In this document: in pieces, positions 54,375 to 64,000 of the stretch
Numbering within the stretch: the first letter of the stretch is position 1
Layout: every line of letters starts with the position of its first letter
DNA from: Dimorphilus gyrociliatus
Taxonomy: Eukaryota > Animalia > Annelida
Direction: 5' to 3'
NCBI GenBank assembly: GCA_904063045.1
Contig: CAJFCJ010000014.1
Span: forward strand, 1,857,643-1,921,642
Length of the DNA: 64,000 nt
Position numbers and translations under genes: made by a program
The notes under the pieces: model-generated
Database searches by the model: none
What the model saw: only the letters and a program-made list of their open reading frames with translations
What the model was told of the DNA's origin: nothing

Positions 54375-55343
54375 TCATAAACCCCGCCCACATAAAGTTT
54401 CTTTTACGGAAATAGACGAAGCTGGTTTGTCAATTAAAGGTTTTCTAGAACATGCAATCTCGTTATATAAATTATTCATATTGGTTTGAAGCCATTTAGA
54501 ATTTTTGATATCTTCAATTGAAGCTCTTAAACTTACATCTGATTCAAGAATAAGATGAACAAGCTTTTTAGACTCATCTGATAATTTTCTCGAACGAGAA
54601 AATCCTACTTTTCTTTCAGTTTGACATTTGATCATGTTCTTTATGTTCGAATCGTCGAAAGGCATTGAGCCGCAAAGCATAATGTATAATATAACACCCA
54701 TACTCCATATGTCATAGGACTTTCCGCTATAAGGAATACCCTGCAGTATTTCTGGTGCAGCGTAGGCAGCACTACCGCAAAACGTCTTACTTAGATCCTT
54801 TTCCATCATTTCGCGAGAAAATCCAAAATCTGATACTTTAATGTTATTTTTAACGTCTAACAATAGATTTTCGCATTTTAAATCTCTATGAACAACATCA
54901 AGACTATGTAAATATTCAACGGCATTAGTTAATTGCTTGAACATATGTCTCGATTTATCCTCGTCCAAAGCTCCTTTTAGTTTAACATATTCTAAAAGAT
55001 CGCCATGTCCAGCCATTTCCATGACAATAAACTTTTTATATCCATAATCGAATACATCGTAACATTTGATAATGTTTGGATGATTAATATTTGTTATGAT
55101 GTTCAATTCTCTTGGTAAGAATTTCTTTAAGAAATCCTTAGGAGCTTTTCTCATATTAATAATTTTTAAAGCTACTTTTGGTCCATCTTTATCTCCCTTT
55201 CTTACAATTGCAGCTCTAACTTTTGCGTATGAACCTTCACCTAAAACGCATCCTATTTCAAATCCTCTTCTCCTAAGCTCCTCCTCATCTTTTACTGCGC
55301 AAACTTTCTCCGTTAATCTTGGTTGTATAGCAATACGTTCCAT
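54375..55343 (-). CDS. Testis-specific serine/threonine kinase (TSSK1/2-like), intronless
   Basis: LGEGSYAKV, KFLPREL, HRDLKCENLLL, DFGF, SKTFCGSAAYAAPEILQGIPY, MPFDDSNIK. Confidence 0.92.
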   Translation of the reverse strand: MERIAIQPRLTEKVCAVKDEEELRRRGFEIGCVLGEGSYAKVRAAIVRKGDKDGPKVALKIINMRKAPKDFLKKFLPRELNIITNINHPNIIKCYDVFDYGYKKFIVMEMAGHGDLLEYVKLKGALDEDKSRHMFKQLTNAVEYLHSLDVVHRDLKCENLLLDVKNNIKVSDFGFSREMMEKDLSKTFCGSAAYAAPEILQGIPYSGKSYDIWSMGVILYIMLCGSMPFDDSNIKNMIKCQTERKVGFSRSRKLSDESKKLVHLILESDVSLRASIEDIKNSKWLQTNMNNLYNEIACSRKPLIDKPASSISVKETLCGRGL

Positions 55344-55671: not shown

Positions 55672-56622
55672 ATGAGTAACTGTGATAATTTTCGAATGGA
55701 AACGTTAAAAGAAGCCTTAAGTAAAGCTGCCAACGAAGTAGAATTATTATTAAGTAACGGTGGCTGGAGTTATAAGCCTACTTATAGAGCTGTTTTAGCC
55801 AAACAGGGCTATTATGTCAAACAAACTATTGGTTCGGGAAGTTATTCAAAAGTTAAATTAGCAGTTGATTACGACAATAAAAGAAAATTAGTTGCTATAA
55901 AAATTATAGATAGGCAAAAAGCGCCAAAAGATTATCAAGATAGATTCTTACCAAGGGAATTATCTATTTGGTCGAGTCTTCGCCATCCTAACCTTGTTAA
56001 TTTACATCGATATTTTGAATCAAATCAAAAAGTTTTCATGATACTGGATTATGGTATTAATGGAGACGCTTTAGAATATATTCAAAAGAAGGGGGCGATA
56101 AGTGAAAGGAATGCTTGTAGGTGGTTTCGACAAACAATTTCAGCCGTTGGTTATATGCATGCGCTTGATATCGCTCATAGGGATTTAAAATTGGAAAATC
56201 TTCTTTTGAATAAAACTTGGGATATTATAGTTTGTGATTTTGGTTTTGTCAAAGACGATTGTAAAAGTTTAAGTTCAACATTTTGTGGTTCAAAATCATA
56301 CGCTGCACCCGAAATACTATTAGGTAATCCTTACCTACCGAAGAAAGCTGACGTGTGGGCTCTTGGAGTAATACTATACATCTTTATAACTGGACAAATG
56401 CCTTTCAGCGAAGCAAAAGGAACAAAATCTATTCTCAACGAGCAGAGATCTTTAATAAATAACTTTCCCAAGTGTCAAAAAATCCCTTCCCTAGTTCGTG
56501 ATCTTGTTCGTAACCTATTCACCTACGACTTCTATAAGAGACCGGAAATAGAAGCAATTTGGTCAAATAATTGGATATTAAACCATAACGGGCTAATAAG
56601 CAGAAAATCAAATAAATTGTAA
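55672..56622 (+). CDS. Second TSSK-family kinase, intronless
   Basis: IGSGSYSKVK, APKDYQDRFLPREL, HRDLKLENLLL, DFGF, STFCGSKSYAAPEILLGNPYLPKKADVWALG. Confidence 0.9.
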   Translation: MSNCDNFRMETLKEALSKAANEVELLLSNGGWSYKPTYRAVLAKQGYYVKQTIGSGSYSKVKLAVDYDNKRKLVAIKIIDRQKAPKDYQDRFLPRELSIWSSLRHPNLVNLHRYFESNQKVFMILDYGINGDALEYIQKKGAISERNACRWFRQTISAVGYMHALDIAHRDLKLENLLLNKTWDIIVCDFGFVKDDCKSLSSTFCGSKSYAAPEILLGNPYLPKKADVWALGVILYIFITGQMPFSEAKGTKSILNEQRSLINNFPKCQKIPSLVRDLVRNLFTYDFYKRPEIEAIWSNNWILNHNGLISRKSNKL

Positions 56623-56812: not shown

Positions 56813-57943
<1,131 letters not shown>

Positions 57944-58630
57944 TTTTATTTAAAGTAAAGTTCTATTTAAACTTAGAAATGACAGAGAAATTGTGAGACA
58001 AATAATTCCCAGTTATCTAAGAAGTGAATATCACCAGTTTAGAAGAGCGGTATCCGGTAAAATGTAGAATATTTTACCTCAAATTTCCAATAGACACCAG
58101 TCTTACTTTACGGTGGCGCCTTCTACATAAAAGTAACATAAAAAGATTTAAATTTAGAACCAGCTGACGTCACTTTTAATGAAAACATCTCAAGCTTATT
58201 TCGCGCTTCATATGAGTAAACATACATATTAAAATATAAATATCTGATATTTTTGCTGAAGAAGCTAAAAATATCTAAAAATATATTAAAAAAGACTGAA
58301 ATAGGTCACATTTTCGAGTTTTTCTAACATAGAAAAAATGATATTCTTTATTTAAAAAAGTGCACAAAAAACAAAATGATATAAATAACATATTCTCTAT
58401 ATTTAAATAAAGATAAAGTAGTTTTTGCAGTAATTAATTATAAACTGAATATGTTAGCTGGAGATTCAAAAAAAAATGCAAAGAGACAAAATCAGTAAAA
58501 AAAAATAACAAACATGTATCAGATTCTTTCAGTTATGTAATAATTTAATCTACAAGTGTCACTATTAATTAGTTTTATCATGACTTTTGCAGTACCATCA
58601 CAATTTCTTTGGTCACATTTATTTAGCTAT

Positions 58631-60118
58631 CTAACTGTGATATACTCGTATCATCTCTGTTATATCTGTACGACATATCGGGCATCCATCTCTTCTATTG
58701 AGTAATGATTTTGCGCACTCGGTACAAGTAACCATATGGTGACAAGGACATAGTAGACAATCGCGTGTTCTATCCATACAAATTGCGCAATCACGATCCG
58801 CATCCGACATATTCGAGTCTAAAAGGAAAATCCTTGTTAATGGAAGAAGATGATTAAATAGATATAATTAACTTGTCTGATCATAATTTATACCAGATCC
58901 GATGCTTGCCCGATGCCCTAATTCAGGTAAATTTCCAGAAAATACATAATCAACACCACAATTCTCTTTCAATCTCCCAATACATGCTATTAATCAATAG
59001 AAATGAATGTATTAGAATTGATTATCTATTTTTTTTCAGCATCTTATATTATATACCTTTCTTTCTTTCTTCCCTTTGTTCTTCACTAAGTACTAAGGGT
59101 TCACTACCAGATCGAAAGAATAAAGTTTTACCCATATTCTCCAATACTTGTCGAACTAATTACAATTAAAAGGAAACATAAGATCTTTACACAGGAAATT
59201 CTGTAGAAAAAAAGTTATATCAATACAAACCTGTTTCTATAGTTTTTCCTGACGTAAATCCACCTGGAGTAATTTCAACTTCCGGTATATAATAAACTGG
59301 ATAGAGGAACCTTAAACCAACCGTTCTCTAAAAGGTTTTTGGATAAATATACTTATTTTATAAGCAAAAAGAAAATTGAAGAAAATATGGCTATAAATAT
59401 GAAGCGTATTTGTAATGAAACAAATACTTATATAACTATAAATAACTAACTTCCTTATTAGTTGCTCTTTCTACAATCGCTGTGATATCCAGACGTAAAG
59501 TATTGGTTGCTACAATGCAGTTCGGTGGGCAGCATTGTGTTACACCTAAGTTAATAAGTTTAGATAACATTTTATAAAAAAACAAATAATGGGATTAAGT
59601 ACGTTCAAAAAGATCCTGTTTTATAGGGAGATCATCAACTACTGCTTCAAATACGAAATCTGCATGCTTTACAGCATCTTCCAATCTGCTAAGACAGTAT
59701 ATTTGACCCTATTTTAAAATTAAAAAGAACGTTATTTATTCATGTATAAAAAATGAGTTGAATTACGTAACTATAAAAGTATTGTTAGATAAAAGTCCTT
59801 CGCTCTTCATCCACTCTTTATCCTCTTCAATTTTGTCGTAAACAGCATTAAGAGCTGTCAAATTGCTGTCATATAGCTTCACTTTGTGGCCGTGATAAGC
59901 CATTTCCCCTATAGATATGAGATAAGTATTAAAACGAATTGAACATATATAAATATAATACTCGAGGCAAATTATGATGAATCATGCATTGCAAAATGGG
60001 AAAAATACAGTATATTTAACCATACATTTGATTTTGATTATTTAGATATAAAATATACAAAATTACCTGCAATTTTGACACCTAAAAGCCCACATCCCAA
60101 CACAGCTATGCAGACCAT
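58631..60118 (-). CDS. 3-hydroxyacyl-CoA-dehydrogenase-like NAD-binding domain fused to a C-terminal C3HC4 RING finger (295 aa, 8 exons)
   Basis: Exons are 60118-60067, 59908-59772, 59708-59603, 59545-59451, 59327-59231, 59155-59057, 58986-58873 and 58818-58631. All introns are GT-AG, every phase is compatible, and the total is 888 nt. Motifs: IAVLGCGLLG, LYD, ADFVFEAVVDDLPIKQDLF, VATNT, VGLRFLYP..VEI, and CAICMDRTRDCLLCPCHHMVTCTECAKSLLNRRDGCPICRTDITEMIRVYHS*. Confidence 0.88.
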
Positions 60119-62784: not shown

Positions 62785-63752
62785 TCAAGGATGACTTGGA
62801 AAGTTCGTCAGGAGAGCCAAATGGCCGGTTTGATTCGAAGAATGCTGCAAAAATTCTTGAATATTGGTTTCATCAGAATCAAAATATTCAGTATGACGAC
62901 TCGCGAATCTAAAAACGTATGTGACTGTTGCAAATGTAGTAGCGTTTACCGGAAACGCTCTGAGCAGAGTCGATCCTAAACCTTTTGTTAAAACAAGCCA
63001 ACCTTCGGAAGCGATACTTTTTCGAAAGCAATCCACCAGACCTTTATATTCATTTCTGACGTCAGCTTGCACTCTAGACTTAATAACGTCAAATGGATAG
63101 GTAACAATCCAGGAACACATTCCAGCTGTTCCTCCTGATAACAATAATTGCATAGTTCCTACTTCTGAAGGATTGCCTATCCTACAGAATTTCTCGTAGG
63201 ACGCAAAATAGACGCCAAAAGAGGGTGTCTCTCTAAGTGTAGTTAACCAGAATCCTCTGTAAACTCCTTTAATTCCCTCTTTCTTAAAAATTTTTACCAA
63301 ACAATCATAAGAATTTTTGTACAGCGTTTGCTTAATCTTTCTGGATTGACCCTGACCTTGGACTTGCAATCGAGTCTTTACTAATTCCATTGGGCTACAT
63401 ATTACGCATTGCGAAAATCCGGCAACTGCGCCAGCAAGGTAATGTGCTGTTAAGCTGTTTGGTTTTGGTAGACGTCTTTGGACATTTCCTTGAACTCCAA
63501 ACACAATAGCATTAATAGCCGTAAGGCCACATAGAGGTGGCGCAATACCTTTATATAAACCAATGAACTATAATTCAATACAATTTAAGCTTTAATTAGG
63601 CCATAGTAAATCTTAACTGTAAATACAAACCGATTCTTTTTTTATTATTTGAGCGAAACAATCAAATGTTCCTTTATAGATAATTGGATTTTGAGTTTGT
63701 AGTCTTACTTTGACAGTGTCAAAAGGATGACCAACAATGACACCAGTAATGC
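62785..63752 (-). CDS. Mitochondrial carrier, SLC25A29/45-like (basic amino acid/carnitine group); first exon not located in the window
   Basis: Three Px[DE]xx[KR] motifs: [36 protein letters not shown]; also LLRAFPVNA. Confidence 0.88.
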
Positions 63753-64000
63753 CTGTATATATATAAAACAAATATACAGTCTACATCGTTATTAGAACAA
63801 AATTTGAAGCCTAAAAAGATTTGTGTCAAATGTTATTGATTTTTTATCGAAAGATTACTCTTTTTCGAACGTTTCAGTTCAGAGAATTTATTCGATTGAT
63901 ATAATTTATAATGATTTTTTATGTAGAAAAAGAACACGTGTTTCACCAAATTTTACACGTAGGGATCATACAAATTTTAATCGTCCAGAGATTACAAGCC

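Follow-up and report, generated by a model that had tools for sequence, protein, structure and literature searches.

A candidate RING ubiquitin ligase with a predicted pseudo-dehydrogenase domain in Dimorphilus gyrociliatus belongs to an ancient metazoan family

Gene structure and transcripts

The window analysed here is a stretch of 64,000 nucleotides (nt) from the annelid Dimorphilus gyrociliatus (GenBank assembly GCA_904063045.1, contig CAJFCJ010000014.1, positions 1,857,643 to 1,921,642 of the forward strand); all positions given below are those of the window. Its minus strand carries, from 60118 to 58631, a gene whose eight exons, with their frames joined by script, splice into a single frame of 295 amino acids (aa), all seven introns being GT..AG. 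The encoded protein consists of an N-terminal Rossmann domain of the 3-hydroxyacyl-coenzyme A (CoA) dehydrogenase type (3HCDH_N; residues ~1–173), a linker of ~60 aa and a C-terminal RING domain (zf-C3HC4_3). The gene is an orthologue in an ancient, metazoan-wide and uncharacterised family. We consider with moderate confidence that the members of this family are E3 ubiquitin ligases with a RING of the inhibitor-of-apoptosis (IAP) type, equipped with a catalytically dead 3HCDH_N module that most likely binds nicotinamide adenine dinucleotide (NAD(H)).

Exon 1 (60067–60118) holds the start codon (60118–60116), the β1 strand and the GxGxxG loop, here GCGLLG, which spans G8 (codon 60097–60095) to G13 (60082–60080); orthologues begin at the same Met. 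Exon 2 (59772–59908) encodes residues 18–63, including Asp31 of β2 (LYD), and exon 3 (59603–59708) encodes residues 64–99 with FEAVVDD..K, which contains E84, D88 and K93. In exon 4 (59451–59545; residues 99–130), the motif TNTLR retains Asn113 and places Leu115 (codon 59498–59496) at the position of the catalytic Ser. Exon 5 (59231–59327; residues 131–163) reads GLRFLYPVYYIPEVE; within its motif GLRFLYP, Arg136 (codon 59312–59310) occupies the position of the catalytic His, and Glu148 is retained. The PGFxxNR motif of active enzymes is deleted from exon 6 (59057–59155; residues 163–196), which reads MGKTLFFRSG.EPLVLSEEQRE.RK and in which a long helix begins. Exon 7 (58873–58986; residues 196–234) encodes a variable and probably disordered linker, its donor at 58872 being taken from the transcript contig described below. 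Finally, exon 8 (58631–58818) encodes residues 234–295 and the stop codon (58633–58631) and contains the C3HC4_3 RING, from C244 (58789–58787) to C282 (58675–58673), followed by Arg283 (58672–58670) and, in the tail, Tyr293 (58642–58640). The eight GT-AG exons and the 295-aa frame had been proposed in a first-pass annotation made from the letters alone, and they are upheld both by our reading of the strand and by a spliced contig; every motif listed there (GCGLLG, LYD, FEAVVDD..K, TNTLR and GLRFLYP) is present, and the Arg codon is where it was placed.

Transcript evidence comes from the contigs, not the raw reads, of one public run (X1), the sole run holding the locus. This run contains 0.48 of the sampled words of the locus, approximately the share expected from exons and untranslated regions. 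A single 847-nt contig, extending from exon 8 (58646) to exon 1, crosses all seven introns at the predicted borders, including the 60067/59908 joint between exons 1 and 2 and both joints of exon 2. Since one spliced contig carries all seven joints, the RING exon lies in the same messenger RNA (mRNA) as the dehydrogenase exons; the gene is expressed as one mRNA, and the fusion of both domains in one gene, as first proposed, is confirmed across the RING exon junction. We took the run as transcript evidence because a contig lacking seven introns is derived from complementary DNA (cDNA) or processed. The contig also rules out a donor of exon 7 at 58893, 21 nt upstream, which would yield 288 aa; it uses the GT at 58872, giving 295 aa. 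An unspliced contig of the same run spans 58411–58675, and the 3′ untranslated region reaches to at least 58411, beyond the stop codon. Furthermore, the exon borders are the same in genomic contigs of two other species from ENA metagenome assemblies (L001:200-4270 and L002:1217-4219), where the gene is spread over 3–4 kb, compared with 1.5 kb in the window, with much longer introns; the proteins are 57–78% identical per exon.

Domain architecture and distribution of the family

When the in-frame exon pieces were scanned against Pfam, exons 2–5 fell collinearly on 3HCDH_N positions 18–57, 69–98, 101–130 and 131–162 (E=4e-5 for the exon 3 piece on 69–98), and exon 8 matched zf-C3HC4_3 with E=2.3e-15. 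Full-length orthologues match 3HCDH_N (PF02737) over residues 1–173 with E=1e-32 to 1e-41, in addition to zf-C3HC4_3. The C-terminal 3HCDH domain (PF00725), which forms the dimer and the substrate cleft in active enzymes (EC 1.1.1.35/157) and is present in bacterial matches, is absent in these scans from the exon pieces and from full-length family members. Both the pairing of 3HCDH_N with zf-C3HC4_3 and the absence of a C-terminal 3HCDH domain had been anticipated from the window protein.

Relatives were collected by searching exon 8 against 1.8 billion representatives and then by using the Lymnaea, coral and amphioxus members as queries. Among the best matches of exon 8 were ~290-aa proteins with 3HCDH_N-like N-termini, and the three further queries retrieved ~100 full-length clusters with the same 3HCDH_N and RING architecture; the ESM Atlas contains one eukaryotic cluster of 152 members with exactly these two Pfam families. 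Members are found in molluscs, annelids, a brachiopod, nemerteans, a flatworm and rotifers; among arthropods and their allies, in chelicerates, myriapods, a barnacle and a priapulid; and also in echinoderms, hemichordates, amphioxus, cnidarians (Nematostella and corals) and sponges (Oscarella and Sycon). No vertebrate, tunicate, insect or nematode member was found, even with the amphioxus query, in a search that needs shared five-residue words and that very divergent copies could escape. Over its full length, the window protein shares 65% identity with the Capitella and Lingula proteins, a match that excludes chance. In the maximum-likelihood tree, which follows animal phylogeny (cnidarians and a sponge; ambulacrarians; ecdysozoans; lophotrochozoans), the window sequence groups with annelids with support of 98/92.

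The architecture itself is therefore not new, ~100–150 sequences with it being already present in public databases. Their names, all automatic, are inconsistent: 3-hydroxybutyryl-CoA dehydrogenase-like, AIM1-like, lambda-crystallin homolog, L-carnitine dehydrogenase and RING-type domain-containing. The first-pass annotation had recognised no characterised protein of this kind while allowing for homologues in databases. The former part stands, as we found no published study of the family in the literature when searching by domains, Pfam accessions, locus names and concepts; however, the ~100 clusters and the 152-member Atlas cluster show that the window protein is not a one-off. Variant architectures also occur (P0026, P0107, P0113), among them a millipede protein with an added N-terminal PX domain; the linker of the Sycon member is ~290 aa long, and in the member from the rotifer Seison ~290 aa follow the RING, so that it is not C-terminal.

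The structure was modelled with AlphaFold2 for the Capitella orthologue (P0166), using an 89-sequence family alignment. The model has a predicted local distance difference test (pLDDT) score of 87.9 and a predicted template modelling score (pTM) of 0.81. Confidence is high for the Rossmann domain and the RING but not for linker residues 207–219 and 225–236, and pLDDT falls below 50 in the exon 7 linker; a long helix (187–204) follows the last strand. In Foldseek comparisons, the N-domain superposes on the NAD domains of Hbd, HADH, MFE1 and CRYL1 at ~2 Å over ~180 residues. The pTM is higher than the N-domain alone, ~70% of the chain, should yield, a hint that the RING might be docked in a fixed position on the N-domain. 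Within the variable, low-pLDDT part of the linker lies the motif [IV]-P-x-L-x-H-x-G-N (residues 215–223, exon 7, about 58929–58903), with P216 and L218 shared by at least 90% of the family sequences. A CtBP-type PxDLS motif was considered for this segment and rejected by eye, the register of P-x-L-x-H not fitting it.

Residue states of the dehydrogenase and RING domains

Residue states were counted in a 99-sequence family alignment, for which eight active bacterial enzymes served as the reference, and residue roles were assigned from the structure of the Faecalibacterium Hbd (A2HBD). In A2HBD, NAD is contacted by D31, E90, K95, N115 and S117, the catalytic triad is formed by S117, H136 and E148, N186 is a substrate residue, and Lys residues of a clamp segment bind the CoA phosphates; active enzymes share the signature HxFxPxxxMxLxE (PMC11476959). 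In the family, the NAD side of this arrangement is kept. The GxGxxG glycines are retained in ~98% of the sequences, Asp31 of β2 in 88 of 96, and an acidic residue at position 88, K93 and E84 in every one of the 99; D88 and K93 align with the NAD ribose contacts of A2HBD. N113 is present in 76 of 98 sequences and is otherwise mostly replaced by S or T. Because the family retains the glycine loop along with four of five NAD-hydrogen-bonding side chains of the active enzymes, the N-domain is predicted, with somewhat better than even probability, still to bind NAD(H). The eight members in which Asp31 is replaced by Ser are P0171, P0175, P0176, P0190, P0193, P0196, P0197 and P0200, and those with a source name are from heterodont bivalves (Ruditapes, Mercenaria, Mya, Mactra and Dreissena). 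The β2 Asp selects NAD over NADP, and its replacement in these members may represent a cofactor switch within the family.

The catalytic side has been altered in the whole family. At the position of the catalytic Ser, 97 of 98 sequences have Leu (82), Met (13) or Ile (2), and Ser is never found; the catalytic His is replaced by Arg in 97 of 98, and Glu148 is kept in 96 of 98. Moreover, the Asn of HFxNP is changed to Phe, Tyr or His, the substrate Asn motif PGFxxNR is lost through a deletion of nine residues in all members aligned, and the Lys of the clamp region in the enzymes is changed to Asp or Glu. With Leu and Arg in place of the catalytic Ser and His, and without the substrate Asn motif or a C-domain, the N-domain, judging by its sequence, can no longer catalyse the dehydrogenase reaction. 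Thus, the loss of the catalytic His and Ser and the retention of the NAD-binding motifs, both initially noticed in the window protein, are properties of the family.

Conservation within the protein peaks in the former active-site loop (131–150; RFL[YF]PVY.IPEVE), where the mean top-residue frequency is 0.82, compared with 0.66 for the domain. This conservation points to the old active site having become a remodelled binding pocket, not a decayed one. The catalytic residues were replaced once, at the base of animals, and their substitutes Arg136 and Leu115 then came under tighter constraint than the remainder of the domain. The first-pass annotation had proposed a dead enzyme retained as a sensor of NAD(H) or acyl-CoA or as a substrate receptor. 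A retained non-catalytic function fits these ancient, family-wide residue states, but the acyl-CoA option is disfavoured, given the deletion of PGFxxNR, the lack of the C-domain that forms the cleft and the Asp or Glu in place of the clamp Lys (PMC11476959).

The RING domain reads C244-x2-C247-x11-C259-x-H261-x3-C265-x2-C268-x10-C279-x2-C282, followed by R283 and a tail ending in IRVYHS. All eight zinc ligands are invariant (each 99/99) and have cross-brace spacing; R283 and P280 are likewise found in 99 of 99 sequences, position 246 is Ile in 91 and Val in eight, and position 293 is Tyr or Phe in 96 of 99. In BIRC7 and RNF4, the Ile after Cys1 and the Pro after Cys7 contact the ubiquitin-conjugating enzyme (E2) and the Arg after Cys8 serves as the linchpin, and in BIRC7, cIAP2, MDM2 and RNF4 an aromatic C-terminal tail mediates RING dimerization and ubiquitin priming. 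The best PDB matches of the RING are cIAP1, MEX3C, cIAP2, XIAP, MUL1, MGRN1 and MDM2. With cIAP1/2, XIAP, BIRC7, MDM2, MUL1, MEX3C and MGRN1, the family shares a zf-C3HC4_3 RING at the extreme C-terminus and the CPICR sequence with its linchpin Arg. As in cIAP1, whose tail is VRTFLS, the aromatic residue stands 11 positions after Cys8 and two before the C-terminus, and the distance from Cys8 to the C-terminus is also equal. Hence the cIAP1 spacing and the family-wide counts bear out the initial assignment to the IAP/MDM2 type with a post-Cys8 Arg and an aromatic tail. Because the zinc ligands, the E2-contacting Ile and Pro, the linchpin Arg and the IAP-like aromatic tail are all present, the window protein is very probably an E3 ubiquitin ligase, and by analogy with cIAP and BIRC7 its RING would most likely dimerize and activate the E2~ubiquitin conjugate.

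Proposed function, alternatives and neighbouring genes

Among known proteins, the closest relatives of the N-domain are HADH, Hbd, MFE1 and CRYL1, with which it has in common the Rossmann fold, GxGxxG, the β2 Asp, the Glu and Lys ribose contacts, the Asn of the SNT motif and the Glu of the His-Glu pair; the family differs from them in the Ser to Leu and His to Arg replacements, in the deletion of PGFxxNR and in having a RING in place of the 3HCDH dimerization and substrate domain. Unlike the IAP-type E3 enzymes, on the other hand, it contains no BIR, CARD, p53-binding, KH or transmembrane module, and apart from the RING only the dead dehydrogenase domain is folded. Two further comparisons are functional analogies only. 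CtBP, a transcriptional corepressor that binds NAD(H) and has the fold of D-2-hydroxyacid dehydrogenases, might parallel the family in using a dehydrogenase fold as an NAD(H)-dependent regulatory module; however, its dehydrogenase fold is a different one, it retains the catalytic residues and it has no RING. In RNF146/Iduna and Deltex, the RING is accompanied by a WWE or DTC domain to which ADP-ribose or NAD binds, and the likeness would lie in a nucleotide-derived ligand beside the RING that controls or joins the ligase reaction, although the ligand-binding folds are unrelated and no WWE or DTC matches were found in the Pfam scans.

On the reading put forward above, the nucleotide-bound Rossmann module would regulate the ligase or recruit its substrates; that the module acts as a ligand-dependent regulator or substrate receptor is a tentative proposal. 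More doubtful still is the narrower idea of a direct redox-sensing ligase, in which the cellular NADH/NAD+ ratio would set the ubiquitylation of targets, NADH versus NAD+ occupancy changing the presentation of the RING (docked or released, monomeric or dimeric); the mechanism would then be ancestral to animals, with later loss in vertebrates, insects and nematodes. Several observations weigh against the proposed assignment. NAD binding is not uniformly predicted across the family, because Asp31 is replaced by Ser in the eight heterodont-bivalve members and N113 by S or T in 17 members. In addition, the invariant Arg that occupies the nicotinamide/substrate site could prevent the cofactor from binding or change the way it binds. 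The model was built for an orthologue with 65% identity and not for the window protein itself, and run X1 comes without an RNA record, its origin from cDNA being deduced from the spliced contig.

The weightiest competing explanation is that the Rossmann domain serves as a protein-interaction scaffold or substrate receptor, its nucleotide residues being kept for fold stability or for a permanently bound structural NAD, with the ligase insensitive to metabolites. That conservation is strongest in the FFRSG..PL.L segment and the remodelled loop of the active site, and not only in the NAD residues, would suit such a scaffold, as would the hint of RING docking from the pTM of 0.81 and the Ser at position 31 in eight members. 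Nevertheless, fold stability can hardly be the whole reason why GxGxxG, D31, K93 and the acidic residue at 88 have persisted since the base of animals, as such residues are usually missing from pseudo-Rossmann domains that no longer have their nucleotide. We regard this explanation as possible but rather unlikely. An oxidoreductase with another chemistry or substrate, working through Arg136 and Glu148 and having a RING that controls only its own stability or localization, would account for the retention of Glu148 and of the NAD site. Moreover, Arg136 and Arg177, both invariant, could serve to hold an anionic substrate, a role that Arg plays in lactate and malate dehydrogenases. Yet every member has lost the His acting as general acid/base as well as the Ser bridging substrate and cofactor, and the substrate Asn motif and the whole cleft-forming C-domain are missing (PMC11476959), making such an activity very improbable.

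We give similarly little credence to a Deltex-like scheme, in which NAD+ or ADP-ribose would be presented to the RING-bound E2~ubiquitin for ubiquitin ADP-ribosylation or ribose ubiquitylation, without any sensing. The sole point in favour of this scheme is the juxtaposition of a RING with a probable NAD pocket in one short protein, for which the RING-DTC ligases of the Deltex type provide a precedent; on the other hand, similarity to DTC was not detected with Pfam, and a Rossmann site buries the dinucleotide. Lastly, the fusion could be an artefact of the gene model, in which two neighbouring genes were joined. This was rejected as having a negligible chance of being correct, considering that a spliced contig spans all exons, ~100 orthologues have the same architecture and the exon boundaries are conserved in other species.

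The preferred assignment is thus an IAP-type ligase with a dead Rossmann module that probably binds NAD(H). Ligases of the RING type that carry their own small-molecule sensor are rare and valuable, both for learning how metabolism governs proteolysis and as switchable degradation tools. The family proteins are small (~290 aa) and strongly conserved, with 65% identity between annelid and brachiopod, and they are recognisable even in sponges; their absence from the usual model organisms probably explains the lack of study. The family is also a clean case of pseudoenzyme evolution, and the gene is carried by tractable animals such as Nematostella, sea urchin, oyster and Capitella.

An alternative intron on the minus strand (58123–58645) connects the RING gene with its downstream neighbour. 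Its donor, GTATAT at 58645, lies immediately after the codon of Arg291, and its acceptor AG is at 58124–58123; the basis is a 192-letter loose end of a run X1 contig at 58646, the letters of which match 58093–58122. This form would end in EMIRKAPP, not EMIRVYHS, so that the tail VYHS would be exchanged for KAPP and the aromatic tail lost. It continues into the 5′ region of a triosephosphate isomerase gene, the acceptor lying 180 nt upstream of its ATG (57942). The alternative splice is a conjoined or read-through transcript and gives a RING isoform without the aromatic tail. The triosephosphate isomerase gene itself, directly downstream on the same strand (56813–57942, minus), has short introns and matches the TIM profile. 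Elsewhere in the window, two intronless and divergent protein-kinase open reading frames of 322 and 316 aa, at 54375–55343 (minus) and 55672–56622 (plus), match Pkinase in Pfam with E=1e-66 and 1e-61, respectively, and resemble, by eye, testis-specific Ser/Thr kinase-like genes. A gene of the mitochondrial carrier family is located at 62785–63771 on the minus strand (Mito_carr, E=8e-49).

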